A stretch of DNA of 64,000 nucleotides, taken from the NCBI RefSeq assembly GCF_902652985.1, contig NC_047022.1, positions 43,338,001 to 43,402,000 of the forward strand, in the 5' to 3' direction. The DNA is from Pecten maximus. Lineage: Eukaryota. Below the pieces are notes generated by a model, which was given only the letters and a program-made list of their open reading frames with translations, ran no database searches and was not told the origin of the DNA. Shown piece after piece: positions 12,868 through 49,415 of the stretch. The stretch's first letter is position 1. The number at the start of each line of letters is the position of its first letter. The position numbers and the translations under genes were made by a program.

Positions 12868-14682
12868 TGTCAGAACAGTTACCTTCCAACTGCAAACATA
12901 TTAGTATATAGGTATGAAGTGCTAAACATAGAATTTACTGATATTTGCTGTTGTTTGATGTCAGAAATCATCAGTTTATCTACAAACTCAATCTATAAAA
13001 TATGATGTCATATTATGTTCTGTTTACATTACTCAGGGTAAGATGATTGATGTCAGTCGTTGAATTCAATTAAAACCATCTAAATCACTGCAATTACTTA
13101 ATGTCAGTCGAGTTGTAATGATGTATACGTGTCTAACTCAATAACTTAATGTCAGTCGAGTTGTAATGATATATACGTGTCTAACTCAGGGTACCGGGTA
13201 TGTAATCGATTAATTTGCTAAACACGTAATAAACGACATCGCTTCAGTATTTCGGCTCCGTGTTCTAGTTAACGTATTTAACTCAGGGTGTTGTTAATCG
13301 TATTACTGCCGATAGTTCATATTGTCGCGACTGTTATTTCAGTTCTAATCGCGAAAGACACAATGTCATTATTTCCTGCTGGTTTCTAGTTTAAGATCTT
13401 TTTTTCTGTAGAGTTAGTATGAAAACAAAATTTCTTGAAATTTAATTGATTTCAGTATAGTGATAACGATATGGTCGATGTTTAAACGGGTTTTAAATTT
13501 TAGGGAGATTTTTCAACAAATGAAAACGAATTATACACACACAAAAAAATGTTTAATTTTAATTTGTTTAAACATTTCCGTGTGGACGCCTACATGTATG
13601 TATGCATTGTAATCTGTGGTAAGTGGTTGATCAAACTCGTGACACACACATACATCATGTTGAATGTTAAAGTGTTTAAGGAAATACAGTTGATAACAGG
13701 AAACATGTCGTGTTTTAGCTGACTTATAAAGTTTGTTGTTAGCACACACTCGGGATTTGTGTATTAAAAGGTCACATTATCTAGAGGTCGGCGATAGATC
13801 AATGACTGAAGGGATTAGGGTACAATTACAAAATAATACACAAATAATATAACTTACATATATCTTATAGTATGTATGCTTACCTTGTGATGGGAAATGG
13901 TTGTTTTATTTACAGTTATCTCAATAACACTGTTGATATCTTGCTGTAGTATGTTTTAATTATGGAACTGTTTTGAGTAATAGATACAATTGTCGTACAT
14001 TGTGTGTGACGCGTCAGGTCTGCAATACTCTGTGTTTAAATCATTGCTTGGAGCAGTGTACATAGTGAAAATGTAAGTTGTTTATTTTTCTAAATAAAAT
14101 GTTGAGTTTAAGACAATGGATTATTACTTGTCCGCATATACCGTAGTAGATATTGTTTATATTACAGAAAACGTTCATCCTATTGACATGGCACGACAAC
14201 ACCTCCCGCGATAACAATATACAGCTGTATAATGATTACATTATATACTATTTGTCTAGCACATGGCATTCGTCTATGAAGGTCTTGGTTGCGAATTGAT
14301 CCTTTTTTTCCCGGTTGACACTTTTCCGTGAAAACCCAGTTCCTTTGAAATTGATTGAACGGGTTTCCTCCTTGTCATCAACAACAGCAACTTATCTTAC
14401 AGCATTGAATACAAGAGTGTCACCTATACCGATTCAGTGTGATGAAGGTAATTAAAACATAAGGTCAGAAACTATCATATACCTGTTTGTGAAAATTATG
14501 GTGAGGATTTAGAGGTTTGACTGTTGATAAAGGGTGGTGTTTAGGGAGAGTCCTAGGAGAGAGTATCCTTGTCATCATTAGAAAAGCAAACACGGAATCA
14601 AAAAAATGAAAAGTACTCACAAGAATTCCAAAGAGAAACCAGAAAATCATCCGGGGTATGTTGTGGTAAGGTAAATAGAGAT

Positions 14683-14897: not shown

Positions 14898-17800
14898 TCA
14901 GTGATGTCCACAGGTTCCTGTAATTAAACAAGCATTGTTTGCATGACGATGGGTATTGTATTACAAAATCACTTATTCGGACACGAAACCAGAATATCAA
15001 CAACAAATCAGTTACCAATTCAAATTCCAGGTCATACAGATGTCCTTGCGATTTTTTTTAAATCAAATAGCCTGTATATTTAATTCACTCTCGTTGTATT
15101 TGGCTACCTTGCCATATAAATTACAGAACACAGCTGCAAATCCATGTTTTAAATATTTTCGACATAAAAAACTCCGGTTTGTATCGGTATAATAAAACGG
15201 GTATGATATGAGATTTAAGGAAATATAGTCAGTTTCTGGCTCCACTCGACCATGCCTATTTCCACGCATCAGCTTCGCTTTGGGAAATAGACCCGGTTCG
15301 GGAAACTGGAGAGTTGCTATATCCCTCATCCCCGTATTTTAACTGTACTAACACATCTCTCTTGCAAACCATTGTATCAACGAATCTCGGTATAAGGGAG
15401 ATAACTGTTTTTGGTGTATTCAAAATATTCTCTTTTGCTTTGGAAATGTAAACGAATAGTTTTTTTATGATCCCATGAATTAAATATATCATTGGTTAAG
15501 GTATCTGTATAAATGTTGTCATATTATTTGTTTCACTGTTAAGATATCAATAGTATAGGTATCTATTATTTGCTTCGCTATAAAAATGGCATTTGAAGCA
15601 TTTGGTGGTTCTCTTTGCTCGCAACCGAATTTACTGTTGGCATGGAATGCTTTTCAAATAATGTAATGTCCTGACCCAAAATTATATCTTTATTTTGTGT
15701 TAGTGATACTGGTTGCCTTCCAGTTGTTTAGGTCACATTCGTTCCTAACACTGTAGACAATTATACATGTCGTGTGCCCAGTACTAGGTTCTATGATTTC
15801 TATTAAAACTAGAATGCCTTTATACGAAGACTAAGCAATGTTGATGCGCTAATCCGCCATACAACACGACTTACCAGACTCGCCTATTGGAACCACGATG
15901 GTTCCGCTTCCTTTGCACACGAGACCGGGACCACACGGACATGCGTACTCCATACCGGTAGGGGGCGTATGGATATATCTAGCGTAACAACCTGTTGGAA
16001 AAAAATGTAAAAAAAATGAAAATCCAAATATATATATAGACATATACATAAATCTGATCTATTAAATATCTCATTTCGTCGATTAAACAAATATAACAAT
16101 TGCAATAACATATTTCGTTTAAATATCTACTTTATATTTTGTTTTCTATTTATTTTAATGTGCGTCTAATTCCGGAGGATTGGCAATTCATTATGGTATA
16201 CAGTAGGATAATGTGTTATTGTCCTAAATTTCCATATCAATGCTCTTGTAATGTATAATATTCAATTTGTGAACATAATTCTACCTTTTTGCGGGGTGGC
16301 TGGATAAATTGTTCATGATCAGTTAAAGTTTTTGTGCAAGTTTCTTCAGTAGAGTCTACACTTCAGTCACCTAATACGTTAATTACGTAATTCATGTGTA
16401 TGTTCTGGTAACTTATGTCTATGTTAGGGTAATCCATGTTTATGTTAGAGTAATTCATGTTTATGTTAGGGTAATTCATGTTGATGTTAGGGTAATCCAT
16501 GTTATGTTAGGGTAATCCATGTTTATGTTAGAGTAATCCATGTTTATGTAAGGGTAATCCATGTTTATGTTAGGGTAATTCATGTTTATGTTAGGGTAAT
16601 CCATGTTTATGTGAGGGTAATTCAGGTTTATGTTAGGGTAATCCATGTTTATGTTAGGGTTATTCATATTTATGTTAGGGTAATTCATGTTTATGTTCGG
16701 GTAATTCATATTTATGGTAGGGTAATTCATGTTTATGTTAGGGTAATTCATGTTGATGTTAGGGTAATCCATGTTTATGTTAGGGTAATTCATGTTTATG
16801 TTAGTATAAGTCATGTTGATGTGAGGGTAATTCATGTTTATGTTAGGGTAATCCATGTTGATGTATGGGTAATCCATGTTTATGTTAGGGTAATTCATGT
16901 TTATGTTAGGGTAATTCATGTTCATGTTAGGGTAATTCATGTTTATGTTAGGGTAATTCATGTTTATGTTCAGGTAATTCATGTTGATGTTAGGGTAAGT
17001 CATGTTGATGTGGGGGAAATCCATGTTTATGCTAGGGTAATTCATGTTTATGTTAGGGTAATCCATGTTTATGTTTGGGTAATCCATGTTTATGTTAGGG
17101 TAATCCATGTTTATGTTAGGGTAATCCATGTTTATGTTAGGGTAATTCATGTTTATTTTAGGGTAATTCATGTTGATGTTAGGGTAATTCATGTCTATGT
17201 TAGGGTAATTCATGTTGATGTTAGGGTAATTCATGTCTATGTTAGGGTAATCCATGTTTATGTTAGGGTAATTCATGTTTATGTTAGGGTAATTCATGTT
17301 TATGTTAGGGTAATTCATGTTGATGTTAGGGTAATCCATGTTTATGTTAGGGTAATCCATGTTGATGTGAGGGTAATTCATATTTATGTTAGGGTAATCC
17401 ATGTTTATGTTAGGGTAATTCATGTTTATGTTAGGATAATTCATGTCTATGTTAGGGTAATTCATGTTGATGTTTGGGTAATCCATGTTTATGTTAGGTT
17501 AATTCATGTTTATGTTAGGGTAATTCATGTTGATGTGAGGGTAATCCATGTTTATGTTAGGGTAAGTCATGTTTATGTTAGAGTAATCCATGTTTATGGT
17601 GGTGTAATTCATGTTTATGTTAGGGTAATTCATGTTTATGTTAGGGTAATTCATGTTTATGTTTGGGTAATCCATGTTTATGTTAGGGTAATCCATGTTT
17701 ATGTTAGGGTAATTCATGTTCATGTTAGGGTAATTCATGTTCATGTTAGGGTAATTCATGTTCATGTTAGGGTAATTCATGTTTATGTTAGGGTAATCCA

Positions 17801-19893
17801 TGTTTATGTTTGGGTAATCCATGTTTATGTTAGGGTAATTCATGTTCATGTTAGGGTAATTCATGTTCATGTTAGGGTAATTCATGTTTATGTTAGTATA
17901 AGTCATGTTGATGTGAGGGTAATTCATGTTTATGTTAGGGTAATCCATGTTGATGTATGGGTAATCCATGTTTATGTTAGGGTAATTCATGTTTATGTTA
18001 GGGTAATTCATGTTCATGTTAGGGTAATTCATGTTTATGTTAGGGTAATTCATGTTTATGTTCAGGTAATTCATGTTGATGTTAGGATAAGTCATGTTGA
18101 TGTGGGGGAAATCCATGTTTATGCTAGGGTAATTCATGTTTATGTTAGGGTAATCCATGTTTATGTTAGGGTAATTCATGTTTATGTTAGGGTAATTCAT
18201 GTTTATGTTAGGGTAATCCATGTTAATATTAGGGTAATCCATGTTTATGTTTGGGTAATTCATATTTATGTTAGGGTAATCCATGTTTATGTTAGGGTAA
18301 TCCATGTTTATGTTTGGGTAATCCATGTTTATGTTAGGGTAATCCATGTTTATGGTAGGGTAATTCACGTTTATGGTAGGGTAATCCACGTTTATGTTAG
18401 GGTAATACATGTTTATGGTAGGGTAATCCATGTTTATGTTAGAGTAATTCATGTTTAAGTTAGGGTAATCCATGTTTATGTTAGGGTAATCCATGTTTAT
18501 GTTAGGGTAATTCATGTTTATGTTAGGGTAATCCATGTTTATGGTAGGGTAATCCATGTTTATGTTAGGGTAATCCATGTTTATGTTAGGGTAATCCATG
18601 TTTATGTTAGGGTAATCCATGTTTATGTTAGGTTAATTCATGTTGATGTTAGGGTAATTCATGTTCATGTTAGGGTAATTCATGTTGATGTTAGGGTAAT
18701 CCATGTTTATGTTAGGGTAATTCATGTTTATGTTAAGGTAATTCATGTTGATGTGAGGGTAATCCATGTTTATGTAATGGTAATTCGTGTTTATGTTAGG
18801 GTAATTCATGTTTATGTTAGGGTAATCCATGTTTATGTTAGGGTAATCCATGTTGATGTTAGGGTAATCCATGTTTATGTTGGGGTAATTCATGTTTATG
18901 TTGGGGTAATCCATGTTTATGTTGGGGTAATTCATGTTTATGTTGGGGTAATTCATATTTATGTTAGGGTAATTCATGTTGATGTTAGGGTAATTCATGT
19001 TGATGTTAGGGTAATCCATGTTTATGTTAGGGTAATCCATGTTTATGTTAGAGTAATCCATGTTTATGTTAGAGTAATCCATGTTTATGTTAGGGTTATT
19101 CAGGTTTATGTTAGGGTAATTCATGTTTATGTTAGGGTAATCCATGTTTATGTTAGGGTAATTCATGTTGATGTTAGGGTAATCCATGTTTATGTTAGGG
19201 TAATCCATGTTTATGTTAGGGTAATCCACGTTTATGTTAGGGTAATCCATGTTTATGGTAGGGTAATTCATGTTGATGTTAGGGTAATTCATGTTTATGT
19301 TAGGGTAATCCATGTTTATGTTTGGGTAATCCATGTTTATGTTAGGGTAATCCATGTTTATGTTAGGGTAATCCATGTTTATGGTAGGGTAATTAATGTT
19401 TATGGTAGGGTAATATTCATGTTTATGTTTGGGCCATGTATAACTCCTGACATCACTGACGAATCCTAGACAGACGAAGCGACTATTATGATGTAGTTCA
19501 TCGGCGTATAATGTTGTTCAAAAATGTTACATTGTTGTATTAAGTTCTTTCTTAGACAATGTGAAGATTTCACATCCATTATATAATGTCGACCTTAGAT
19601 CTAGTGAATGATATTGTGCAAAATATAAACACAGGAGCTGTAGGTTTATTATGAAATTGCTTACACAATCGACGAATTCCAATTAGCTTTTCCCACATTA
19701 AGTGTTAAATTGCATTTCAAGGTTGTTTTTTAACAGTAATTCTTATCATGTACTTACTAGAACCATCCTGGCCCAATGGCCGACAGGTACCAGCCGCCAT
19801 GAGACCTCGCTTTCCAATCGGCTGGTTGTTTGCTACACAACATTCGCCATGCCCACAATCTGAGGCAGATGTACAGTCCTCTGCTGAGACAAA
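14898..19893 (-). CDS. Prokineticin/astakine-like (colipase-fold) 10-Cys secreted peptide, paralogue A; signal-peptide exon not found
   Basis: Exons 19893-19758, 15991-15875 and 14917-14898, with canonical AG/GT and phases 0/1/1. Translation [90 protein letters not shown]. Cys pattern C-x5-C-x4-CC-x17-C-x9-C-x15-CPC-x5-C-x15-C. Confidence 0.88.
16410..19430. repeat. 21-bp minisatellite containing TTAGGG, about 140 copies, in an intron of paralogue A
   Basis: Unit catgtttatgttagggtaat(t/c). Source of the MDYPNIN and RVIHVYV ORFs. Confidence 0.97.
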
Positions 19894-20293
19894 CTACAAA
19901 GGAAAGGAGTGCAATAAATGTACAGAAACTAACGTATACATAATCACATTTGAACATGTTAGTATGTAAAGAAAAGTTATTACAATTGATTAAATATATA
20001 TTGTTGACAAATTTTTTTTTTTCATTTTGAAATGTTTTTATTCATCCTTTTGCATTATTGTGAGTACATCAAATACATAGAAAAAGCATTAATTATAGAA
20101 TATGACAAAACAAATTGATTTGCGGTATTTTAGATAACTACATTTCTCAGGATTTTGTAAATTTGAAGCATGAAACAAAGACAATGACACTAAACCTATC
20201 ACGTTAACCTTTTTATTTCACCTTTATCGAAGTTTCGTGTGCAATATTTTGTTTTCTATCCATCATGATTAACTAATACGAGTCATCTTAAAT

Positions 20294-23200
20294 GATCTCC
20301 TGTGTCAGTAGATAGGTAACCGAGTCACTGTCACAACATTTATATAATGTTTAATCTCCTGTGTCAGTAGATAGAGAACCGAGTCACTGTCACAACATTT
20401 ATATGATGTTTAATCTCCTGTCAGTAGATAGAGAACCGAGTCACTGTCACAACATGTATATGATGTTTAATCTCCTGTGTCTGTAGATAGAGAACCGAGT
20501 CACTGTCACAACATTTATATGATGTTTAATCTCCAGTGTCAGTATAGAGAACCGAGTCACTGTCACAACATGTATATGATGTTTAATCTCCTGTGTCAGT
20601 AGATAGAGAACCGAGTCACTGTCACAACATTTATATGATGTTTAATCTCCTGTGTCAGTAGATAGAGAACCGAGTCACTGTCACAACATTTATATGATGT
20701 TTAATCTCCAGTGTCAGTATAGAGAACCGAGTCATTGTCACAACATTTATATGATGTTTAATCTCCTGTCAGTAGATAGAGAACCGAGTCACTGTCACAA
20801 CATTTATATGATGTTTAATCTCCTGTGTCAGTATAGAGAACCGAGTCACTGTCACAACATTTATATGATGTTTAATCTCCTGTGTCAGTAGATAGAGAAC
20901 CGAGTCACTGTCACAACATTTATATGATGTTTAATCTCCTGTGTCAGTAGATAGAGAACCGAGTCACGGTCACAACATTTATATGATGTTTAATCTCCTG
21001 TGTCAGTAGATAGAGAACCGAGTCACCGTCACAACATTTATATGATGTTTAATCTCCTGTGTCAGTAGATAGAGAACCGAGTCACTGTCACAACATTTAT
21101 ATGATGTTTAATCCCCTGTGTCAGTAGATAGAGAACCGAGTCACTGTCACAACATTTATATGATGTTTAATCTCCTGTCAGTAGATAGAGAACCGAGTCA
21201 CTGTCACACCATTTATATGATGTTTAATCTCCAGTGTCAGTATAGAGAACCGAGTCACTGTCACAACATTTATATGATGTTTAATCTCCTGTGTCGGTAG
21301 ATAGAGAACCGAGTCACTGTCACAACATTTATATGATGTTTAATCTCCTGTGTCAGTAGATAGAGAACCGAGTCACCGTCACAACATTTATATGATGTTT
21401 AATCTCCTGTGTCAGTAGATAGAGAACCGAGTCACTGTCACAACATTTATATGATGTTTAATCTCCTGTGTCAGTAGATAGAGAACCGAGTCACTGTCAC
21501 AACATTTATATGATGTTTAATCTCCTGTGTCAGTATAGAGAACCGAGTCACTGTCACAACATTTATATGATGTTTAATCTCCTGTGTCAGTAGATAGAGA
21601 ACCGAGTCACTGTCACAACATTTATATGATGTTTAATCTCCTGTGTCAGTAGATAGAGAACCGAGTCACTGTCACAACATTTATATAATGTTTAATCTCC
21701 AGTGTCAGTAGATAGAGAACCGAGTCAGTCACAACATTTATATGATGTTTAATCTCCAGTGTCAGTATAGAGAACCGAGTCACTGTCACAACATTTATAT
21801 GATGTTTAATCTCCAGTGTCAGTAGATAGAGAACCGAGTCAGTCACAACATTTATATGATGTTTAATCTCCAGTGTCAGTATAGAGAACCGAGTCACTGT
21901 CACAACATTTATATGATGTTTAATCTCCAGTGTCAGTAGATAGAGAACCGAGTCACTGTCACAACATTTATATGATGTTTAATCTCCTGTGTCAGTATAG
22001 AGAACCGAGTCACTGTCACAACATTTATATGATGTTTAATCTCCTGTGTCAGTAGATAGAGAACCGAGTCACTGTCACAACATTTATATGATGTTTAATC
22101 TCCTGTGTCAGTAGATAGAGAACCGAGTCACCGTCACAACATTTATATGATGTTTAATCTCCTGTGTCAGTAGATAGAGAACCGAGTCACTGTCACAACA
22201 TTTATATGATGTTTAATCCCCTGTGTCAGTAGATAGAGAACCGAGTCACTGTCACAACATTTATATGATGTTTAATCTCCTGTCAGTAGATAGAGAACCG
22301 AGTCACTGTCACACCATTTATATGATGTTTAATCTCCAGTGTCAGTATAGAGAACCGAGTCACTGTCACAACATTTATATGATGTTTAATCTCCTGTGTC
22401 GGTAGATAGAGAACCGAGTCACTGTCACAACATTTATATGATGTTTAATCTCCTGTGTCAGTAGATAGAGAACCGAGTCACTGTCACAACATTTATATGA
22501 TGTTTAATCTCCTGTGTCAGTAGATAGAGAACCGAGTCACCGTCACAACATTTATATGATGTTTAATCTCCTGTGTCAGTATAGAGAACCGAGTCACTGT
22601 CACAACATTTATATGATGTTTAATCTCCTGTCAGTAGATAGAGAACCGAGTCACTGTCACACCATTTATATGATGTTTAATCTCCAGTGTCAGTAGATAG
22701 AGAACCGAGTCACTGTCACAACATTTATATGGTGTTTAATATCCTGTCAGTAGATAGAGAACCGAGTCACTGTCACAACATTTATATGATGTTTAATCTC
22801 CTGTCAGTAGATAGAGAACCGAGTCACTGTCACAACATTTATATGATGTTTAATCTCCTGTGTCAGTAGATAGAGAACCGAGTCACTGTCACAACATTTA
22901 TATGATGTTTAATCTCCTGTGTCAGTATAGAGAACCGAGTCACTGTCACAACATTTATATGATGTTTAATCTCCTGTCAGTAGATAGAGAACCGAGTCAC
23001 TGTCACACCATTTATATGATGTTTAATCTCCAGTGTCAGTATAGAGAACCGAGTCACTGTCACAACATTTATATGATGTTTAATCTCCTGTGTCGGTAGA
23101 TAGAGAACCGAGTCACTGTCACAACATTTATATGATGTTTAATCTCCTGTGTCAGTAGATAGAGAACCGAGTCACTGTCACAACATTTATATGATGTTTA

Positions 23201-24070
23201 ATCTCCTGTGTCAGTAGATAGAGAACCGAGTCACCGTCACAACATTTATATGATGTTTAATCTCCTGTCAGTAGATAGAGAACCGAGTCACTGTCACAAC
23301 ATTTATATAATGTTTAATCTCCAGTGTCAGTAGATAGAGAACCGAGTCAGTCACAACATTTATATGATGTTTAATCTCCAGTGTCAGTATAGAGAACCGA
23401 GTCACTGTCACAACATTTATATGATGTTTAATCTCCAGTGTCAGTAGATAGAGAACCGAGTCAGTCACAACATTTATATGATGTTTAATCTCCAGTGTCA
23501 GTATAGAGAACCGAGTCACTGTCACAACATTTATATGATGTTTAATCTCCTGTGTCAGTAGATAGAGAACCGAGTCACTGTCACAACATTTATATGATGT
23601 TTAATCTCCAGTGTCAGTAGATAGAGAACCGAGTCACTGTCACAACATTTATATGATGTTTAATCTCCTGTGTCAGTAGATAGGGAACCGAGTCACTGTC
23701 ACAACATTTATATGATGTTTAATCTCCTGTGTCAGTAGATAGAGAACCGAGTCATTGTCACAACATTTATATGATGTTTAATCTCCTGTGTCAGTAGATA
23801 GAGAACCGAGTCATTGTCACAACATTTATATGATGTTTAATCTCCTGTGTCAGTAGATAGAGAACCGAGTCACTGTCACAACAGTTATATGATGTTTAAT
23901 CTCCTGTGTCAGTAGATAGGGAACCGAGTCACTGTCACAACATTTATATGATGTTTAATCTCCTGTGCCAGTATAGAGAACCGAGTCACTGTCACAACAT
24001 TTATATAATGTTTAATCTCCAGTGTCAGTAGATAGAGAACCGAGTTACTGTCACAACATTTATATCATGT
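20294..24070. repeat. 59-bp minisatellite, about 64 copies
   Basis: Unit atctcctgtgtcagtagatagagaaccgagtcactgtcacaacatttatatgatgttta, with 57-bp variants. Confidence 0.97.
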
Positions 24071-24072
24071 TT

Positions 24073-24082
24073 CTTTTTATAC
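24073..24082 (-). promoter_or_regulatory. Candidate TATA box upstream of paralogue A
   Basis: GTATAAAAAG on the minus strand, directly abutting the first unit of the 59-bp array. Confidence 0.3.
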
Positions 24083-24570
24083 TTAGGAGCCGTCAAACAC
24101 ATGTGATAAACGTCAACAATCAGTTGAATAATCTGATGTATAGAAAAATTACAACATCTGAATCGAATCTTAACATTGCTCACGGGTAATGTTCAATCAA
24201 ATGTTAACATTTCCCAGTGGGAATGTTCAATCAAATTTTATCAGTTCTTAGGGAGATTTTTTAATCAAATATTAACAATTTCTCAGTGGAAATGTTCAAG
24301 TAGGATTTCATTGGTTTATAAAATATGTTTTGACTGGATTTGCTGATTAGATTCTTCTTAAAAGACCGCCATTTATTATTGTGATTAGTTAATTGTTCGC
24401 ATTCAATTTATTTATTTTAAATCAGGACATGAAAACTGGATATGGAAAACCGGTGACTAAAAAATATCTATTTAAAGAACAAAACAACAAGAAATACTCA
24501 TTTATTCTTTATTTCGTTTACTTAAATATGGTATCCCGATACAAAATGGCGTTTCCAGTTTTATCATATT

Positions 24571-27500
24571 CTACAAGTGATGAGTGCAAACACCTGAAAA
24601 GCCATAGAGAAGAAACAAGTTAGTAGCATTTTTAGCTCAAGATACATTTAAAACAAATAAATGATGTACTTCACAGAGAGTCGTTTAGTGGAAATATTTC
24701 ATTTTAATTAAAAACGTCAATTTTTGCAATACAAGTAAATGAAAAATGAATTTACGTAACCGATAACTATTTACCTGATTCCCCAAGGGGTACCTCAAAA
24801 ACACCACTTCCTTTACACGTGAGGTGACCGTCACATGGACAAGAGGTTACGACGCCAGAGGGCGGTGTACTTGCACTTCCGTAACGGGTCAGGCAGTCTA
24901 GATATGACAAATATTTACATTGTAAGTTAATGTTTATCTTGTCCACACTACACCGCGGAAGTATTTTTTTCATCAACTCATTTGTTTATTTTGTAAATTC
25001 CATTACCATAAAGAGAAGTGTATTTTAATTAACGGAATTTCAAAAAGAAATGTTGGAATAAATTATTCCATTTGTAAATCGAAAATATATGTTAACTGCG
25101 AAAATATAACAATTTGTAAAATGATTATTTACATCTTTTTTATAATTCATGTATTGTTAAATCAAGTATCCAACAATAGAAACACACTCACGTGAGCCTT
25201 CCTTGCCCAGAGCCTGGCAGTGACCCGTTACAATAAGAAGCATCCGTTTCCCTATCGGCTGGTTGTTTGTAACACAGCATTCATTAGCTCGACAATCAAG
25301 GTGGGAGTGACATCCTTCTGACACACCAAACTGATTTAATAATGGTAACATACAGTAGTGGGAGTGACATCCTTCTGACACACCATACTGATTTAATAAT
25401 GGTAACATACAGTAGTGGGAGTGACATCCTTCTGACACACCATACTGATTAATAAGGTTAACATACAGTAGTATTTCGTGTGAATTTGGTCGATCTCCCG
25501 CATGGGTATGTACAGACTAAGGATCTATGTGATGCGTTTGATACCAACAGTTGTCAGGAACGTCAATATCTAATATGGATGTTATATGATGTTAGTAGAA
25601 TTGACGGAGGATCTAGGGGCCTGTAGTGTAGATACCTAGAGGGTGACGGAGGATCTAGGGGTCTGTAGTGTAGATACCTAGAGGGTGACGGAGGATCTAG
25701 GGGTCTGTAGTGTAGATACCTAGAGGTGACGGAGGATCTAGGGGTCTGTAGTGTGGATACCTAGAGGGTGACGGGGGATCTAGGGGTCTGTAGTGTAGAT
25801 ACCTAGAGGGTGACGGAGGATCTAGGGGTCTGTAGTGTAGATACATAGAGGGTGACGGAGGATCTAGGGGTCTGTAGTGTAGATACCTAGAGGTGACGGA
25901 GGATCTAGGGGTCTGTAGTGTAGATACCTAGAGGTGACGGAGGATCTAGGGGTCTGTAGTGTAGATACCTAGAGGGTGACGGAGGATCTAGGGGTCTGTA
26001 GTATAGATACCTAGTGGGTGACGGAGGATCTAGGGGTCTGTAGTGTAGATACCTAGAGGGTGACGGAGGATCTAAGGGCCTGTAGTGTAGATACCTAGAG
26101 GGTGACGGGGGATCTAGGGGTCTGTAGTGTAGATACCTAGAGGGTGACGGAGGATCTAGGGGTCTGTAGTGTAGATACCTAGAGGGTGACGGGGGATCTA
26201 GGGGTCTGTAGTGTAGATACCTAGAGGGTGACGGGGGATCTAGGGGTCTGTAGTGTAGATACCTAGAGGGTGACGGGGGATCTAGGGGTCTGTAGTGTAG
26301 ATACCTAGAGGGTGACGGAGGATCTAGGGGTCTGTAGTGTAGATACCTAGAGGGTGACGGATGATCTAGGGGTCTGTAGTGTAGATACCTAGAGGGTGAC
26401 GGGGGATCTAGGGGTCTGTAGTGTAGATACCTAGAGGGTGACGGGGGATCTAGAGGTCTGTAGTGTAGCTACCTAGAGGTGACGGAGGATCTAGGGGTCT
26501 GTAGTGTAGATACCTAGAGGGTGACGGGGGATCTAGGGGTCTGTAGTGTAGATACCTAGAGGGTGGCGGGGGATCTAGGGGTCTGTAGTGTAGATACCTA
26601 GAGGGTGACGGAGGATCTAGGGGTCTGTAGTGTAGATACCTAGAGGGTGACGGGGGATCTAGAGGTCTGTAGTGTAGCTACCTAGAGGTGACGGAGGATC
26701 TAGGGGTCTGTAGTGTAGATACCTAGAGGGTGACGGGGGATCTAGGGGTCTGTAGTGTAGATACCTAGAGGGTGGCGGGGGATCTAGGGGTCTGTAGTGT
26801 AGATACCTAGAGGGTGACGGAGGATCTAAGGGCCTGTAGTGTAGATACCTAGAGGTGACGGAGGATCTAGGGGTCTGTAGTGTAGATACCTAGAGGGTGA
26901 CGGAGGATCTAGGGGTCTGTAGTGTAGATACCTAGAGGTGACGGAGGATCTAGGGATCTGTAGTGTAGATACCTAGAGGGTGACGGGGGATCTAGGGGTC
27001 TGTAGTGTAGATACCTAGAGGGTGACGGATGATCTAGGGTTCTGTAGAGTAGATACCTAGAGGGTGACGGGGGATCTAGGGGTCTGTAGTGTAGATACCT
27101 AGAGGGTGACGGAGGATCTAGGGGTCCGTAGTGTAGATACATAGAGGGTGACGGGGGATCTAGGGGTCTGTAGTGTAGATACCTAGAGGTGACGGAGGAT
27201 CTAGGGGTCCGTAGTGTAGATACCTAGAGGGTGACGGAGGATCTAGGGGCCTGTAGTGTAGATACCTAGAGGGTGGCGGGGGATCTAGGGGTCTGTAGTG
27301 TAGATACCTAGAGAGTGACGGGGGATCTAGGGGCCTGTAGTGTAGATACCTAGAGAGTGACGGGGGATCTAGGGGTCTGTAGTGTAGATACCTAGAGGGT
27401 GACGGAGGATCTAGGGGCCTGTAGTGTAGATACCTAGAGGGTGACGGGGGATCTAGGGGTCTGTAGTGTAGATACCTAGAGGGTGACGGGGGATCTAGGG

Positions 27501-30500
27501 GTCTGTAGTGTAGATACCTAGAGGGTGACGGGGGATTTAGGGGTCTGTAGTGTAGATACCTAGAGGGTGACGGAGGATCTAGGGGTCTGTAGTGTAGATA
27601 CCTAGAGGGTGGCGGAGGATCTAGGGGCCTGTAGTGTAGATACCTAGAGGGTGACGGAGGATCTAGGGGTCTGTAGTGTAGATACATAGAGGGTGACGGA
27701 GGATCTAGGGGTCTGTAGTGTAGATACCTACAGGGTGACGGGGGATCTAGGGGTCTGTAGTGTAGATACCTAGAGGGTGACGGGGGATCTAGGGGTCTGT
27801 AGTGTAGATACCTAGAGGGTGACGGGGGATCTAGGGGTCTGTAGTGTAGATACCTAGAGGGTGACGGGGGATCTAGGGGTCTGTAGTGTAGATACCTAGA
27901 GGGTGACGGAGGATCTAGGGGTCTGTAGTGTAGATACCTAGAGGGTGACGGAGGATCTAGGGGTCTGTAGTGTAGATACCTAGAGGGTGACGGGGGATCT
28001 AGGGGTCTGTAGTGTAGATACCTAGAGGGTGACGGAGGATCTAGGGGTCTGTAGTGTAGATACCTAGAGGGTGACGGGGGATCTAGGGGTCTGTAGTGTA
28101 GATACCTAGAGGGTGACGGAGGATCTAGGGGTCTGTAGTGTAGATACCTAGAGGGTGACGGAGGATCTAGGGGTCTGTAGTGTAGATACCTAGAGGGTGA
28201 CGGGGGATCTAGGGGTCTGTAGTGTAGATACCTAGAGGGTGACGGAGGATCTAGGGGTCTGTAGTGTAGATACCTAGAGGGTGACGGAGGATCTAGGGGT
28301 CTGTAGTGTAGATACCTAGAGGGTGACGGGGGATCTAGGGGTCTGTAGTGTAGATACCTAGAGGGTGACGGGGGATCTAGGGGTCTGTAGTGTAGATACC
28401 TAGAGGGTGACGGGGGATCTAGGGGTCTGTAGTGTAGATACCTAGAGGTGACGGAGGATCTAGGGGTATGTAGTGTAGATACCTAGAGGTGACGGAGGAT
28501 CTAGGGGTCTGTAGTGTAGATACCTAGAGGGTGACGGGGGATCTAGGGGTCTGTAGTGTAGATACCTAGAGGGTGACGGAGGATCTAGGGGTCTGTAGTG
28601 TAGATACCTAGAGGGTGAGGGGGGATCTAGGGGTCTGTAGTGTAGATACCTAGAGGGTGACGGAGGATCTAGGGGTCTGTAGTGTATAGATACCTAGAGG
28701 TGACGGAGGATCTAGGGGTCTGTAGTGTAGATACCTAGAGGGTGACGGAGGATCTAGGGGTCTGTAGTGTAGATACATAGAGGGTGACGGAGGATCTAGG
28801 GGTCTGTAGTGTAGATACCTAGAGGGTGACGGAGGATCTAGGGGTCTGTAGTGTAGATACCTAGAGGGTGACGGAGGATCTAGGGGTCTGTAGTGTAGAT
28901 ACCTAGAGGGTGACGGGGGATCTAGGGGTCTGTAGTGTAGATACCTAGAGGGTGACGGGGGATCTAGGGGTCTGTAGTGTAGATACCTAGAGGGTGGACG
29001 GAGGATCTAGGGGTCTGTAGTGTAGATACCTAGAGGGTGACGGGGGATCTAGGGGTCTGTAGTGTAGATACCTAGAGAGGTGACGGGGGATCTAGGGGTC
29101 CTGTAGTGTAGATACCTAGAGGGTGACGGGGGATCTAGGGGTCTGTAGTGTAGATACCTAGAGGGTGACGGAGGATCTAGGGGCCTGTAGTGTAGATACC
29201 TAGAGGGTGACGGGGGATCTAGGGGTCTGTAGTGTAGATACCTAGAGGGTGACGGGGGATCTAGGGGTCTGTAGTGTAGATACCTAGAGGGTGACGGGGG
29301 ATCTAGGGGTCTGTAGTGTAGATACCTAGAGGGTGACGGAGGATCTAGGGGTCTGTAGTGTAGATACCTAGAGGGTGGACGGAGGATCTAGGGGTCTGTA
29401 GTGTAGATACCTAGAGGGTGACGGAGGATCTAGGGGTCTGTAGTGTAGATACCTAGAGGGTGACGGAGGATCTAGGGGTCTGTAGTGTAGATACCTAGAG
29501 GGTGACGGGGGATCTAGGGGTCTGTAGTGTAGATACCTAGAGGGTGACGGGGGATCTAGGGGTCTGTAGTGTAGATACCTAGAGGGTGACGGGGATCTAG
29601 GGGTCTGTAGTGTAGATACCTAGAGGGTGACGGAGGATCTAGGGGTCTGTAGTGTAGATACCTAGAGGGTGACGGGGATCTAGGGGTCTGTAGTGTAGAT
29701 ACCTAGAGGGTGACGGGGGATCTAGGGGTCTGTAGTGTAGATACCTAGAGGGTGACGGAGGATCTAGGGGTCTGTAGTGTAGATACCTAGAGGGTGACGG
29801 GGGATCTAGGGGTCTGTAGTGTAGATACCTAGAGGGTGACGGAGGATCTAGGGGTCTGTAGTGTAGATACCTAGAGGGTGACGGGGGATCTAGGGGTCTG
29901 TAGTGTAGATACCTAGAGGGTGACGGAGGATCTAGGGGTCTGTAGTGTATAGATACCTAGAGGTGACGGAGGATCTAGGGGTCTGTAGTGTAGATACCTA
30001 GAGGGTGACGGAGGATCTAGGGGCCTGTAGTGTAGATACATAGAGGGTGACGGAGGATCTAGGGGTCTGTAGTGTAGATACCTAGAGAGTGACGGAGGAT
30101 CTAGGGGTCTGTAGTGTAGATACCTAGAGGGTGACGGAGGATCTAGGGGTCTGTAGTGTAGATACCTAGAGGGTGACGGAGGATCTAGGGGTCTGTAGTG
30201 TAGATACCTAGAGGGTGACGGGGGATCTAGGGGTCTGTAGTGTAGATACCTAGAGGGTGACGGGGGATCTAGGGGTCTGTAGTGTAGATACCTAGAGGGT
30301 GGCGGAGGATCTAGGGGTCTGTAGTGTAGATACCTAGAGGGTGACGGAGGATCTAGGGGTCTGTAGTGTAGATACCTAGAGGATGATAGAGGATCTAGGG
30401 GTCTGTAGTGTAGATACCTAGAGGGTGACTGGGGATCTAGGGGTCTGTAGTGTAGATACCTAGAGGGTGACGGAGGATCTAGGGGTCTGTAGTGTAGATA

Positions 30501-31673
30501 CCTAGAGGGTGACGGGGGATCTAGGGGTCTGTAGTGTAGATACATAGAGGGTGACGGAGGATCTAGGGGTCTGTAGTGTAGATACCTAGAGGATGATAGA
30601 GGATCTAGGGGTCTGTAGTGTAGATACCTAGAGGGTGACGGAGGATCTAGGGGCCTGTAGTGTAGATACCTAGAGTGTGACGGAGGATCTAGGGGTCTGT
30701 AGTGTAGATACCTAGAGGGTGTCGGGGGATCTAGGGGTCTGTAGTGTAGATACCTAGAGGGTGACGGAGGATCTAGGGGTCTGTAGTGTAGATACCTAGA
30801 GGGTGACGGAGGATCTAGGGGTCTGTAGTGTAGATACCTAGAGAGTGACGGGGGATCAAGGGGTCTGTAGTGTAGATACCTAGAGGGTGACGGAGGATCT
30901 AGGGGTCTGTAGTGTAGATACCTAGAGGTGACGGAGGATCTAGGGGTCTGTAGTGTAGATACCTAGAGGGTGACGGAGGATCTAGGGGTCTGTAGTGTAG
31001 ATACCTAGAGGGTGACGGGGGATCTAGGGGTCTGTAGTGTAGATACCTAGAGGGTGACGGGGGATCTAGGGGTCTGTAGTGTAGATACCTAGAGGGTGAC
31101 GGAGGATCTAGGGGTCTGTAGTGTAGATACCTAGAGGGTGACGGAGGATCTAGGGGTCTGTAGTGTAGATACCTAGAGGGTGACGGGGGATCTAGGGGTC
31201 TGTAGTGTAGATACCTAGAGGGTGACGGAGGATCTAGGGGTCTGTAGTGTAGATACCTAGAGGGTGACGGAGGATCTAGGGGTCTGTAGTGTAGATACCT
31301 AGAGGGTGACGGAGGATCTAGGGGTCTGTAGTGTAGATACCTAGAGGGTGACGGAGGATCTAGGTGGTGTATTGCCCTTTAATGTTAATAAATGACATAA
31401 TTTTCAATGTAGGATTTCAAAATGATGGCAAGTAAATGTATCAATATTCAAACGTGATATACGCGTTACTTGAATGTACCACGTGACTTTTCTCCAACAG
31501 TAAGGACCCTAGCGCTTCCTTCCGAGCAAGCTATAATAATATAGGTTGACGTACCTTGTTCACAATTGTTGTGAGACAAATAAAGTCTATAGTTTTTACG
31601 ACAAACATGATGTTCTCACCATAAACACCACCGTTACGAGGAAGAGAGTGATACCAGCTGGTCTGAACGTCAT
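24571..31673 (-). CDS. Prokineticin/astakine-like 10-Cys secreted peptide, paralogue B (112 aa)
   Basis: Exons 31673-31620 (MTFRPAGITLFLVTVVFM, donor GTGAGA), 25330-25192, 24897-24775 and 24593-24571. Remainder: [94 protein letters not shown]. Same intron phases as A and C; AATAAA near 24501. Confidence 0.9.
25301..25471 (-). repeat. 57-bp triplication spanning the exon-2 splice acceptor of paralogue B
   Basis: Three copies of gtgggagtgacatccttctgacacaccaWactgatttaataatggtaacatacagta; possible exon starts at 25444, 25387 and 25330. Confidence 0.9.
25603..31363. repeat. 42-bp G-rich minisatellite, about 137 copies, in intron 1 of paralogue B
   Basis: Unit gacggRggatctaggggtctgtagtgtagatacctagagggt. 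Source of the YLHYRPLDPPSPSR ORFs. Confidence 0.97.
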
Positions 31674-32077
31674 CCTAGCACGTAATATGTCCAAGTCAGG
31701 TATCGGATGTGTATGTGTGCCAGGTAGTAATCTTATCAGTTAGACTGGTGTTAGATTCCAAGATTTTAACCACTGGAACGTACCAATGACAAATATAAAT
31801 AAAACTGATAAGGCTCCTTCCAGGTGACACTCTTTTCTCTAAATCCGAAACAATCACTTTATCTTCTGATTAGCTAAGAAAGTTTTAACAACACTCGACA
31901 ATAAACTTATACCTGAATTAGACCAATTCCTTATTCTACAGGCCCCATTGTTATAATTGTCATTAATTATGACATTCTCTTGTTACTGCTGTTGGACAGT
32001 TGTGTTAATATGTCGATAGCAGATGATGACCAAGTCAATGTGAACACTTTAACGTCTTCTTTCTACAGACAACATAA

Positions 32078-32232
32078 GGTAGGAGACGAAAAACAAGAAA
32101 TAGGAAATTCACGATTGAAAGATCAAAATAGAAGCTATCATACTTCATCGACGACACTCGCAAAGCTAGGGGACGAAAAACAAGAAATAGGAAATTCGCG
32201 GTTGAAAAATCAAAATAGAAGCTATCATACTA
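32078..32232. repeat. About 88-bp diverged direct duplication
   Basis: tagg(a/g)gacgaaaaacaagaaataggaaattc...caaaatagaagctatcatact occurs twice. Confidence 0.75.
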
Positions 32233-32542
32233 TTTATTGAATGTCATCCTTTTATATTCCGAGAAACGTAGATGTCGATGTGACCAGCTGATATAGAAGA
32301 GTTTGTAGTGTTAGTGTTATAGATTAGGTATATACAGTCGACGTTAACTTCCAATACATCGTCGGTCTTCTTTCCTTGCTTATGTTCTCTTTGATTTAAA
32401 GTTACAGGTGTGATGTTGGTATAAATTGGTTTTTACACACAGAATACACAACAGGTCAAAGTTAACGTAAACATTGTTTATTATCCTATACAGTTACAGA
32501 CTGTTTTATTAAAGCTTTAAACATTCCATCCGTCCACTGTCT

Positions 32543-35500
32543 TTAGTGATGAGTACATACACCTACAAACAAAAAGGAAATCACACACGTTTTACATGTA
32601 CACTACCTGATATTCCACCTAATCTCAATATCCAAATATCCTTGTTTTTCCATGAGAATCTTTGTTTTGATGATATTTTCTTTTTTTGTTCACAGGTCGA
32701 TATTGTTTTCTTGGTTTGTTGCTACACAATGTCATATTAAATATAAGTAAAGGAATCATCTCAAAACTATGGCGACATGACAGGTTTACTTAACCCAGGT
32801 AAACAATGACAATACAGGTATCCCTAACCCAGGTAAAACAATGACAATACAGGTATCCCTAACCCAGGTAATCAATGACAATACAGGTATCACTAACCCA
32901 GGTAATCAATGACAATACAGGTATCCCTAACCCAGATAATCAATGACATTACATGTATCCCTAACCCAGGTAATCAATGACAATACAGGTATCCCTAACC
33001 CAGGTAATCAATGACATTACAGGTATCCCTAACCCAGGTAATCAATGACAATACAGGTATCCCTAACCCAGGTAATCAATGATATTACAGGTATCCCTAA
33101 CCCAGGTAATCAATGACATTACTGGTATCCCTAACCCTGGTAATCAATGACAATACATGTATCCCTAACCCAGGTAATCAATGACATTACAGGTATCCCT
33201 AACCCAGGTAATCAATGACAATACAGGTATCCCTAACCCTGGTAATCAATGACAATACATGTATCCCTAACTATGGTAATCAATGACAATACAGGTATCC
33301 CTAACCCAGGTAATCAATGACAATACAGGTATCCCTAACCAAGGTAATCAATGACAATACAGGTATCCCTAACCAAGGTAATCAATGACAATACAGGTAT
33401 CCCTAACCAAGGTAATCAATGACAATACAGGTATCCCTAACCCAGGTAGTCAATGACAACACAGGTATCCCTAACCCAGGTAATCAATGACATTACATGT
33501 ATCCCTAACCCAAGTAATCAATGACAATACAGGTATCCGTAACCCAGGTAGTCAATGACAATACAGGTATCCCTAACCCAGGTAAACAATGATAATACAG
33601 GTATCCCTAACCCAGGTAATCAATGACAATACAGGTATCACTAACCCAGGTAATCAATGACATTACAGGTATCCCTAACCCTGGTAATCAATGACATTAC
33701 ATGTATCCCTAACCCAGGTAGTCAATGACAATACAGGTAACCCTAATCCAGGTAATCAATGACAATACAGGTAACCCTAACCCAGGTAATCAATGACATT
33801 TCAGGTATCCCTAACCCGGGTAATCAAAGACAATACAGGTATCCCTAACCCTGGTAATCGAAGACAATACAGGTATCCCTAACCCAGGTAATCAATGACA
33901 ATACAGGTATCCCTAACCCAGATAATCAATGCCATTACAGGTATCCCTAACCCAGGTAATCAATGACATTACAGGTATCCCTAACCCTGGTAATCAATGA
34001 CAATACATGTATCCCTAACTATGGTAATCAATGACAATACAGGTATCCCTAACCCAGGTAATCAATGACAATACAGGTATCCCTAACCAAGGTAATCAAT
34101 GACAATACAGGTATCCCTAACCAAGGTAATTAATGAAAATACAGGTATCCCTAACCCAGGTAGTCAATGACAACACAGGTATCCCTAACCCAGGTAATCA
34201 ATGACATTACATGTATCCCTAACCCAAGTAATCAATGACAATACAGGTATCCCTAACCCAGGTAATCAATGACAATACAGGTATCCCTAACCAAGGTAAT
34301 CAATGACAATACAGGTATCCCTAACCCAGGTAATCAATGACATTACAGGTATCCCTAACCCAGGTAATCAATGACATTACAGGTATCCCTAACCCAGGTA
34401 ATCAATGACAATACAGGTATCCCTAACCCAGGTAATCAATGACATTACAGGTATCCCTAACCCAGGTAATCAATAACAATACAGGTATCCCTAACTATGG
34501 TAATCAATGACAACACAGGTATCCCTAACCCAGGTAATCAATGACATTACAGGTATCCCTAACCCAGGTAATCAATGACATTACAGGTATCCCTAACCCA
34601 GGTAATCAATGACATTACAGGTATCCCTAACCCAGGTAATCAATGACAATACAGGTATCCCTAACCCTGGTAATCGAAGACAATACAGGTATCCCTAACC
34701 CAGGTAATCAATGACAATACAGGTATCCCTAACCCAGATAATCAATGCCATTACAGGTATCCCTAACCCAGGTAATCAATGACATTACAGGTATCCCTAA
34801 CCCTGGTAATCAATGACAATACATGTATCCCTAACTATGGTAATCAATGACAATACAGGTATCCCTAACCCAGGTAATCAATGACAATACAGGTATCCCT
34901 AACCAAGGTAATCAATGACAATACAGGTATCCCTAACCAAGGTAATTAATGAAAATACAGGTATCCCTAACCCAGGTAGTCAATGACAACACAGGTATCC
35001 CTAACCCAGGTAATCAATGACATTACATGTATCCCTAACCCAAGTAATCAATGACAATACAGGTATCCCTAACCCAGGTAATCAATGACAATACAGGTAT
35101 CCCTAACCAAGGTAATCAATGACAATACAGGTATCCCTAACCCAGGTAATCAATGACATTACAGGTATCCCTAACCCAGGTAATCAATGACATTACAGGT
35201 ATCCCTAACCCAGGTAATCAATGACAATACAGGTATCCCTAACCCAGGTAATCAATGACATTACAGGTATCCCTAACCCAGGTAATCAATAACAATACAG
35301 GTATCCCTAACTATGGTAATCAATGACAACACAGGTATCCCTAACCCCGGAAACCAACGAAATTATAAGGTGACACAACAATCTTCATAATTAACTACCT
35401 CAAACAGCGAGTGCTCGAAAGGCCAGCGTTCCTGTGCTTTGTATATATGGCTTATTTCATTATTATAACGTCAACGATTCAAAGAAGGTGTCAGTCAGCC

Positions 35501-37452
35501 AATTAAAATATAGGCATTTCCATACCGACAGGAACTGTTGTGAGCTACTGATTTAATTTTTTTTTTTTTTTTTCATGTAGATGAAATCTGATCTATTCTG
35601 CATCAAGTAAAGACTGAGTACCCGATTCGCCTAGCGGGACTTCAAAATAGCCGCTTCCTTTACACATCAGCCCAGCACCACATGGACATGCGTACACGAT
35701 ATCAGAGGGTGGTGTTGTGAGGCCTCCTCCGTACCGTACCAGACATCCTGAAAACACATCTAATGTGAAGGTCTGGACAGCAAGGCATTTTATCTTCTCT
35801 CGGAACTCATGTCGTGATCGTAAAATAATTTGCAAAATTGATAATTAAACTAATGATAATTGATAATTGAACTAACGATAATTGAAAATTGAACTATCGA
35901 TAATTGATAATTGAACTAACGATAATTGATAATTGAACTAACGATAATTGAAAATTGAACTATCGATAATTGATAATTGAACTATCGATAATTGATAATT
36001 GAACTATCGATTGTGTTTCTAACAGAGCGGGTGGCTATCAACTACCAATCCTCCACACATGTGCCTGTTAAAATTGAAGGAAATATAAAGATGGATTGAT
36101 CTCGAGGTCACCGTCACTCCGTGATCTTCAAATTAGTGATTTGGTCATTGCATACATATATATTTGTCATCTATCAAATAGATAATTTGTATGCCTTCGA
36201 TTTCGCCATAACAAAACTAAGATTCCAGGTGTTGAGAGAGCGAGAGGGAATGTCACCCTTGGAATATGGAGGATGCCGATACTTTAACTCACGTGCTCCT
36301 TGTTGGCCCATAGCTTGGCAGTGTCCGGCCTCTAGGAGGGACATTCGTCTCCCCCTGGGAGGATTGTTGGAGACACAACATTCGTTGGACCCACAGTCTT
36401 GTTGTGAATAACAGCCTTCTGATGAACCAAACTAACAAAGAAAAGTCAATTGTTTTATAACCGGATTTGACCTAGATTTGTATGACGGGTGTCGTCGTGA
36501 CCGAGATTTGTATGACGGGTGTCGTCGTGACCGAGATTTGTATGACGGGTGTCGTCGTGACCGAGATTGGTATGACGGGTGTCGTCGTGACGTAGATTGG
36601 TATGACGGGTGTCGTCGTGACCTAGATTGGTATGACGGGTGTCGTCGTGACCGAGATTGGTATGACGGGTGTCGTCGTGACCTAGATTGGTATGACGGGT
36701 GTCGTCGTGACCTAGATTTACATATTTGCCCCTCGTTTTGTCGATTCCAAGTAAGAGTTAAGGTTTCGTTATTATGTTGGGTATGTTGTTTTTGACAATC
36801 TCTTCATACACAGTGTTTGTTGACAATAAATATTGTCAATGATATATAAAGGTAGGTTATCAAACCATTGAGTATTTACACTAACATATATTGTATTGCT
36901 AACAGATACTCTATTATAAGAGAAATGATAACTAATCCGTTTGATCTACATAGATCTGGAGGCTTTGATACCGACATAAAACAATTATGTAAACTAACTT
37001 ATATTATTAATATTAACAGTCACATTGGCTTAAATCGTGTAAACCAGTGTCGTTGGTTTTATTTATTTGTTTTTGAATAGCAGAAGAAAATACACTATTA
37101 CAGAAGGATACCGAATCAATTATACAGTGACATTACGTCATATAGTCTAAACTTTGATTTACGTAAACACATTTACATGTTAAAATATACTATCGATAAT
37201 AATACTGTCGATAGTGGAACTACCTGACACGGGCATTCGGTTCATAACTGATCTGATATCATGATAACCTTATTTATAGGCGACAGTGCGGAGATACATA
37301 CATGTTATTTAGGGAGCAGCACTGACTGTCAACAACTTATCGAAAACACCACCAATGATACTGGAACAAAACGTGGCCTTGACCTCAACATTGCCGAGAT
37401 AACTTACCGAAAACAGTACCAAAAACACCAGGACAAAACTCGCCGCCATCAT
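32543..37452 (-). CDS. Prokineticin/astakine-like 10-Cys secreted peptide, paralogue C (109 aa)
   Basis: Exons 37452-37408 (MMAASFVLVFLVLFS, donor GTAAGT), 36431-36293, 35747-35622 and 32562-32543. Remainder: FGSSEGCYSQQDCGSNECCVSNNPPRGRRMSLLEAGHCQAMGQQGARCLVRYGGGLTTPPSDIVYACPCGAGLMCKGSGYFEVPLGESGVCTHH*. AATAAA near 32505 and 32477. Confidence 0.92.
32789..35347. repeat. 34-bp minisatellite containing CCCTAACCC, about 75 copies, in intron 3 of paralogue C
   Basis: Unit ccctaacccaggtaatcaatgacaatacaggtat. Confidence 0.97.
35835..36011. repeat. 22-bp AT-rich tandem repeat, about 8 copies
   Basis: Unit ttgataattgaactatcgataa. Confidence 0.85.
36467..36720. repeat. 30-bp minisatellite, about 8 copies
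   Basis: Unit gacctagattggtatgacgggtgtcgtcgt. A diverged single copy lies at about 47833-47875. Confidence 0.92.
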
Positions 37453-47546: not shown

Positions 47547-48197
47547 ACGTTCTTAAAAAAGAACGTTTCAATAGTGCAGTGATGGTAAGCCCGATATCAA
47601 GGTCACCAACCTGGAATAAAACAAAATTTCAAATGTAAGATAAAGAGCATGAATGTCTTGTTTAAGATACATAATGAAGACAATGATAATTTTTTAATGG
47701 TCATTATGATATCATTTGGTAATATACTACTTCGTTATGCGATGTGTATGACTTATTTGATGTTTATTGATATGCCTAGTGACAACGTTCACCACCATAG
47801 TTCTCATTTTGAGAATTTTAAGTAACCTGGGTTTGACCTAGATTTGTATGGTGGGTGTCTTCGTTACCTAGATCTGTTTGCACCTGTTCAAGTGTCCTCA
47901 TGCAAATCTGTACTTCTTTTGTTCGTAATGAAAATATATATCCCCCAAATACTATGTTTAGTTTCCGAATTCTATCAAACAACTAACGGAATCATTAAAA
48001 AGTCTATGTAATTTTCTTCATTACATTGTGCAAATATTTCGGTCTCCGTGTTAACTAGTTATACCTATTGTATTCATGAAGGTACGATAGTCTTGAATAT
48101 AGAGGAGTATCTTTTCATGACCTCTATTTGAGTTCTTGGAAGCATGGGAGTTTCCCATGAAATTAGTCATGAAATATCAGCAACATTATGTTCTTAC

Positions 48198-48986: not shown

Positions 48987-49415
48987 GACACAATGTTTTC
49001 TTCTTTAGAGTTTAAAAACGCAGACAAATCACAAATTGTAAGTGGTTAATCGACAACAAAAGCTTGAACGTGATTGGTCTGGTTTGCTTCACTGTTACCA
49101 GACTCAAAACAATTATTTTTGCCTTTTTCTGTTGGTTACTGTTAAAAGGATACATCTGGGACAGATATATTACCTCTTTGTAAGGTCATCCATATTTAAA
49201 TTAACATTTCTAAACTTGTTTTCAAGGCCACGTGTAATTGAGTTGAAACTAGAAACGTAGGACAAAAGATAATTCAACATCGTGGATATTTTGAAAATTT
49301 ATTTAATACATTTAATGCATGTAACAATAAATAATCAAAAGCAATAATACATTACCCCAGATCAATAAAACAAAATAAGGTGTAGTTGGTAAAGACAACA
49401 TTTATAATAGATATG

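Follow-up and report, generated by a model that had tools for sequence, protein, structure and literature searches.

A conserved Gly-dibasic site in the enlarged Cys4-Cys5 loop of scallop astakine-like peptides and the two-chain product it may give

The vertebrate prokineticins, together with Bv8 and the mamba toxin MIT1 (Pfam family PF06607), adopt a ten-cysteine colipase fold, and the hexapeptide AVITGA is conserved in vertebrates. Arthropod astakines from crayfish and shrimp, which act as haematopoietic cytokines and bind ATP-synthase beta, contain a prokineticin domain too, one without AVITGA. Spider venom peptides of the MIT-like/CsTx-20 type are AVIT-less as well, have ten cysteines and possess a known disulfide map (PMC6468893). 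In lophotrochozoans, prokineticin/astakine-related proneuropeptides (Cragi-prokineticins 1-5 and entries in mollusc, annelid, brachiopod and phoronid catalogues) have been described as consisting of one domain behind a signal peptide, and their receptor is listed as unknown (PMC8398477, PMC6425005, PMC8557429, PMC3890597). These peptides have a place in lophotrochozoan neuropeptide catalogues and have been linked to haemocyte production in the oyster. Here we analyse a tandem cluster of three minus-strand genes of the same family (paralogues A, B and C, four exons each) in a 64,000-nucleotide stretch of the scallop Pecten maximus genome (contig NC_047022.1, positions 43,338,001 to 43,402,000), which is referred to as the window. 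The subject of our study is a Gly-Lys/Arg-Arg site in the loop between the fourth and fifth cysteine of the encoded peptides.

Family and fold of the scallop peptides

All three paralogues are annotated in RefSeq, A as 'astakine-like isoform X3' (P0160), B as isoforms X1, X2 and X4 of LOC117333589 (P0003, P0001 and P0002), and C as 'U3-aranetoxin-Ce1a-like' (P0159). The genes and their family are thus already known. What appears to be undescribed in the literature we searched is a position-fixed, phylum-spanning Gly-dibasic site in an enlarged loop, together with the two-chain amidated product that it predicts. The published lophotrochozoan peptides are described as compact ten-cysteine single-domain molecules, and neither an internal Gly-dibasic site nor a two-chain product is mentioned in the main texts and supplements that we searched.

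Each gene product consists of a signal peptide and one ten-cysteine domain. Reverse-complement translation of the second exons yielded peptides of the type C-x5-C-x4-CC-loop-C-x-[PAL]-[LM]-G, and the C-x5-C-x4-CC ... CPC spacing with ten cysteines is complete in A, in B (isoforms X1 and X2) and in C. RefSeq proteins served as full-length queries, and exon peptides were used singly. Against PF06607 (cut-off 21.6 bits) A scored 27.6 bits and C 11.8 bits and B gave no match; the Mizuhopecten orthologue of B lies above the cut-off with 24.0 bits. Single exon peptides gave Pfam matches to Colipase_C, Dkk and DX, all of them sub-threshold. The best PDB sequence matches of the profile were Bv8, MIT1, colipase and a theraphotoxin, all of which were weak (E 0.03-1.5). 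An AlphaFold2 model of B, based on a 46-sequence alignment, reached a confidence (pLDDT) of 83.4. In a Foldseek comparison its best match was MIT1 (1imt, probability 1.0, TM score 0.67), and the best matches as a whole (1imt, 1lpb, 1pcn, 2n8k, 3s2k and 2kra, probability 0.84-1.0) comprise MIT1, colipase, U33-theraphotoxin, the C-domains of Dkk, and Bv8.

The scallop peptides resemble the vertebrate prokineticins, Bv8 and MIT1, their top matches in PDB sequence and structure comparisons, in the ten-cysteine colipase fold and in cysteine spacing except for the Cys4-Cys5 loop. They differ from them in that only A passes the Pfam threshold, in the length and content of that loop, and in the lack of AVITGA, which is not present after the signal peptide in any of the three; there the residues read ...FVSAEDC, ...FGVSEGC and ...FGSSEGC. 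The absence of the hexapeptide had been pointed out in a sequence-only reading of the locus. Given the colipase fold and the missing AVITGA, the scallop peptides belong with the AVIT-less colipase-fold peptides that in invertebrates go by the names of astakine or prokineticin-related, as also reflected in the RefSeq name of A. Several molluscan relatives have been automatically named after the spider MIT-like/CsTx-20-type peptides. The disulfide bonds 1-4, 2-5, 3-7, 6-9 and 8-10 were determined experimentally in the AVIT-less spider peptide CsTx-20 (PMC6468893) and are also found in MIT1. By homology to these two we infer the same map for the scallop peptides.

The Gly-dibasic site and its conservation

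The Cys4-Cys5 loop comprises 17 residues in A and 18 residues in B and C, compared with 11 residues in Bv8 (2kra) and MIT1 (1imt). It contains GKR in A and B and GRR in C, where the complete loop reads VSNNPPR-GRR-MSLLEAGH, and all three motifs were confirmed base by base at the coordinates given in Table 1. The residues past the site differ among the paralogues. The longer loop, the three motifs and the divergence behind them had all been proposed in the sequence-only reading, and each of these observations held up. In a profile alignment to Bv8 and MIT1 the enlargement appears as a 7-residue insertion directly after GKR. In the model of B the site is predicted to lie between the strands 35-39 and 54-58, within a loop (residues 40-53) modelled without secondary structure, and residues 41-50 show a pLDDT of 72, lower than the rest.

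It is important to note that three paralogues sharing a motif by common descent do not represent a chance test in themselves. First word-based homologue searches retrieved scallop sequences only. The orthologues of B in Argopecten and Mizuhopecten have kept GKR; because they have also kept the entire loop, they do not discriminate, and a search for distant relatives was therefore carried out. An exhaustive HMMER profile search of 1.84 billion cluster representatives yielded 138 relatives, from which 129 distinct Cys4-Cys5 loops were extracted. The pattern G-[KR]-[KR] occurs in 85 of these loops (66%), and in 77 of the 85 the glycine stands exactly seven residues past the CC pair. Among relatives found at E <= 1e-10, every loop (66/66) has the dibasic pair and 56 of the 66 have the glycine. 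When the loops were shuffled (n=1000), the motif turned up in 10.2 +/- 3.0 loops, with a maximum of 20, and a chance origin of the motif was rejected on this basis. Its density per 100 residues amounts to 3.53 within the loops versus 0.19 outside.

Column statistics give the same picture. In alignment A2 the site columns hold G in 38/41, K/R in 42/42 and K/R in 40/42 sequences and are among the most conserved non-cysteine columns, the glycine being as conserved as the structural glycines, whereas the next six columns are among the most variable. At the three site positions the information content reaches 4.3, 3.5 and 3.8 bits; over the five residues past the presumed cut it is down to 0.4-1.8 bits. 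On the upstream side five of seven positions carry about 2 bits, with the consensus V-S-x-x-[RQ]-P-[IRKL]; the side that would be amidated is thus at least as conserved as the side after the cut.

The site is found in relatives from five invertebrate phyla: molluscs, annelid, bryozoan, brachiopods and phoronid. The mollusc sequences come from oysters, mussels, clams, Solemya, Sinanodonta, Littorina, Elysia, Reishia and a chiton, and the annelid Owenia and the bryozoan Watersipora add to the non-mollusc relatives. In the supplement of an independent catalogue (PMC8557429), each of the four brachiopod sequences has GKR at position 8 past the CC pair, as does one sequence of Phoronopsis; the 14 nemertean sequences listed there all have short loops without the site. 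It is likewise absent, with loops of 9-11 residues, from amphioxus PROK1, a spider toxin of Liphistius (9 residues), one Gigantopelta protein, Bv8 and MIT1. In the Platynereis precursor the loop is short, too. Judged from these sequences, the enlarged loop with G-K/R-R is an ancient lophotrochozoan feature. Conservation of GKR in orthologues had been suggested as a check on the site; since the motif sits at a fixed place in most of the loops and reaches far beyond the scallops, the objection that it is not conserved fails.

Two further features of the relatives deserve mention. For P0006-P0015, P0018 and P0027, from bivalves and annelids, two to five tandem domains are predicted, each with its own loop site; these may represent genuine multi-domain precursors, or else tandem arrays like the scallop cluster whose gene models have been fused. 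Moreover, P0046, P0019 and P0115 have two basic sites in one loop, e.g. GKR...KR, which by analogy with insulin would excise a short connecting peptide.

Processing of the loop

Sites used by the convertase/carboxypeptidase/PAM pathway are characterised by a glycine before a dibasic pair, arginine at P1, a preference of KR over RR over KK/RK, multibasic expansions and a free-running downstream spacer. In 82 of the 85 motif loops Arg is the last residue of the basic run. Pure pairs are KR in 53 loops, RR in 9, KK in 2 and RK in none, and 20 loops contain multibasic runs such as RKKR, RRRR, RRKR, KKKR, KRRKR and similar. The tail between the site and the conserved G-x-Cys5 varies between 2 and 23 residues. 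The combination of glycine, P1 arginine, pair hierarchy, multibasic runs and variable spacer is the signature of a convertase/carboxypeptidase/PAM site. The best reading of the sequence data, which in our judgement has slightly more in its favour than against it, is that the mature product would consist of two disulfide-linked chains, one of them amidated.

The same features bear on an alternative, namely that G-K/R-R has been conserved as a surface epitope on the tip of the first colipase-fold finger, for example a basic patch that binds a receptor, glycan or lipid, and that the peptides stay uncleaved as single chains. In colipase and in Dkk, finger loops do serve for binding. The characterised members of the fold are all single-chain (PMC6468893; PDB structures), and the reported expression of the oyster relatives is largely non-neural. 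Yet so strict a pair hierarchy is not what one would expect of a binding patch, nor would such a patch need an invariant glycine at P3, multibasic expansions, or free variation in length and sequence directly past the motif. We therefore regard an uncleaved epitope as rather unlikely, although it is the likeliest of the alternatives.

The conserved glycine speaks to a second alternative, in which the loop is cut and amidation is incidental or absent, such that a furin-like or extracellular trypsin-like protease would switch a cytokine on or off in the haemolymph without PAM. In keeping with this, about 15 further loops carry KR or RR at the equivalent place without the glycine, including one Gly-to-Ala variant. 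Arg or Lys occupies P4 in 39 of the 85 motif loops (R/K-G-K/R-R), and C with its RGRR matches the furin consensus. On the other hand, of the roughly 100 loops with a dibasic at the site position, 85 have a Gly in front of it, as do 38/41 sequences of alignment A2. This conservation is hard to explain unless the glycine itself is used, and cleavage without amidation seems improbable to us.

For the favoured two-chain amidated product, the following steps can be envisaged. A proprotein convertase would cut at G-K/R-R in the Cys4-Cys5 hairpin loop and, after carboxypeptidase trimming, PAM would turn the exposed glycine into a C-terminal amide. The resulting N-chain of about 22-26 residues would contain Cys1-4, with the Cys1-Cys4 bond internal to it, and end in ...QPI-NH2 (A and B) or ...PPR-NH2 (C), while the C-chain of about 61-65 residues would contain Cys5-10. 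With the disulfide map of MIT1 and CsTx-20, a cut at this site would leave the two chains joined by Cys2-Cys5 and Cys3-Cys7, consistent with the linkage put forward in the sequence-only reading. We infer cleavage, amidation and any effect on activity from sequence features. As for the machinery, the P. maximus genome has P-domain convertases at five or more loci and also codes for copper-monooxygenase C-domains.

A third idea concerns the function of the new end. The sequence-only reading had suggested that the hydrophobic, paralogue-specific N-terminus released by the cut (GLMAAG, MLLIVTG or MSLLEAG) stands in for the missing AVITGA agonist end as a proteolytic switch. The three scallop tails are indeed hydrophobic, and throughout the family there is a weak preference for Leu at the second residue past the cut (29/77). 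In contrast to AVITGA with its conservation in vertebrates, however, the tails vary in length, are poorly conserved (see the values above), and many are polar or acidic. In addition, no cognate PKR-type receptor has been reported in protostomes, which are stated to have no prokineticin-receptor orthologue (PMC8398477, PMC8557429), so that nothing requires an AVITGA-like agonist end. This part of the earlier proposal is not supported, and we consider it very improbable. Because conservation is concentrated in the site and in the residues preceding it, the functional product would more likely be the amidated end than the new N-terminus, should the loop be processed as predicted.

Several points weigh against a two-chain amidated product. 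The literature searched on the family contains no report of a two-chain or amidated product; the peptidomics carried out in oyster was not aimed at peptides of this length. The relatives that have been solved or purified, MIT1, Bv8 and CsTx-20, are single-chain, though they lack the site; CsTx-20 was purified as a single chain of 86 residues, unlike the predicted scallop product. In A and B neither P4 nor P6 is basic, which makes them poor furin substrates and would call for PC1/PC2-type enzymes. The genome's matches to Cu2_monoox_C (PF03712) concern a domain that is not specific to PAM. Oyster relatives were reported mainly from the digestive gland and the male gonad, not from neurons (PMC8398477), and one gastropod relative is named a capsule-gland secretory protein. 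Expression of A and C is indicated by RefSeq models only. Finally, the search profile itself contained GKR, so that a slight enrichment of motif-bearing matches near the E-value threshold is possible.

Precedents exist on both the precursor and the product side. The Platynereis prokineticin precursor has been reported to bear amidated LFV-amide peptides N-terminal to the domain (PMC3890597), which suggests that precursors of the colipase/prokineticin fold can enter the convertase/PAM pathway. In the insulin/relaxin family, in spider omega-agatoxin IA and in the two-chain CsTx toxins, a disulfide-locked precursor is cut within a bridged loop, at basic or other processing sites, into covalently linked chains. 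We use these as a working analogy only, as the scallop peptides have an unrelated fold, would usually be cut once without excision of a connecting peptide, and would carry the amide on the upstream chain. By this analogy, the loop insertion with its Gly-dibasic site would have converted a cytokine of the colipase fold into a hormone processed like insulin. Extended to the whole group, native lophotrochozoan prokineticin/astakine-like peptides could be two-chain heterodimers in which two disulfides join an amidated N-chain to the C-chain, and not the single chains that have been assumed; we put this forward tentatively, at somewhat less than an even chance. If this is true, single-chain recombinant proteins could be the wrong ligand for receptor finding, and receptor searches and bioassays should then employ the processed peptide. 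The family would then provide a further, independent example of how a protein with a single disulfide-rich domain has become a hormone of two chains. The predicted chain ends make the two-chain product directly testable by mass spectrometry.

Exon structure, isoforms and repeats of the cluster

Three exon peptides (38-44 residues) were scanned against the window, and the remaining exons were placed by splice phase and then matched to RefSeq proteins. For A, B and C the splice-phase exon models agree with RefSeq (Table 1). The small last exons were located by a phase-aware scan; a tblastx comparison of the sequences that follow exon 3 gave no match for them. When the whole assembly was searched with the profile, no copies beyond A, B and C came up.

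Table 1 Coding exons and loop sites of the three paralogues (window coordinates)
Feature	Position	Strand	Basis
Exon 1 common to B isoform X1 and A (isoform X3); signal peptide, 18 codons, phase 0, GTGAGA donor	31620..31673	-	position, donor; P0003/P0160 identity
Alternative first coding exon, B isoform X2; weakly hydrophobic N-terminus	31555..31608	-	
B exon 2: Cys1-Cys5, 18-residue loop	25192..25330	-	matches P0003
B Gly-Lys-Arg codons GGG AAA CGG; putative amidation/dibasic cleavage site	25244..25252	-	
B exon 3: Cys6-Cys9	24775..24897	-	
B exon 4: Cys10, stop	24571..24593	-	
A exon 2: Cys1-Cys5, 17-residue loop	19758..19893	-	matches P0160
A Gly-Lys-Arg codons GGA AAG CGA	19807..19815	-	
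A exon 3	15875..15991	-	P0160
A exon 4: Cys10, stop	14898..14917	-	P0160
C exon 1: own signal peptide	37408..37452	-	P0159
C exon 2: Cys1-Cys5, 18-residue loop	36293..36431	-	P0159
C Gly-Arg-Arg codons GGG AGA CGA; preceding Arg gives R-G-R-R, full furin-type R-X-R-R consensus	36345..36353	-	
C exon 3	35622..35747	-	P0159
C exon 4: Cys10, stop	32543..32562	-	P0159

By inspection the first exons carry a hydrophobic core and are signal-peptide-like. The first 18 residues of P0160 (A) and P0003 (B isoform X1) are identical. A scan between A exon 2 and B exon 4 revealed nothing credible as a signal-peptide exon of A's own, and a candidate at 19957-19898 was rejected because it is in the wrong frame. 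From the identical start of the two proteins it follows that the exon at 31673-31620 splices either to B exons 2-4 or to A exons 2-4. A and B are thus not separate genes in this respect: RefSeq isoform X3 joins the B signal exon to A exons 2-4, skipping those of B, and one promoter and one signal exon serve two mutually exclusive three-exon cassettes with different mature peptides.

The other two B isoforms deviate at either end. In isoform X4 (P0002) the exon 3 donor (GGTAAATAG; 24771-24790) is read through and the protein ends in ...GESGK; without Cys10 it has nine cysteines, so that one would stay unpaired. The start ATG of isoform X2 lies 11 nucleotides downstream of the exon 1 donor. Since the resulting N-terminus is charged and weakly hydrophobic, it may not work as a signal peptide.

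A 57-bp unit repeated three times at 25301-25472 spans the acceptor of B exon 2, whereby the exon start and the acceptor have been triplicated in frame. The cluster as a whole is rich in repeats. Very large minisatellite arrays with 90-96% match occupy its introns and spacers (21 bp x 145 at 16387-19433, 59 bp x 65 at 20295-24072, 42 bp x 137 at 25602-31364 and 34 bp x 75 at 32780-35347) and make up most of the inter-exon distance. Elsewhere in the window, a run of 100 N at 52360-52459 marks an assembly gap or mask. Other tandem-repeat arrays lie at 5451-5814, 12164-12901, 48166-49011, 50106-52213 and 61569-62728, and in six-frame translation they give rise to spurious long cysteine-rich open reading frames.

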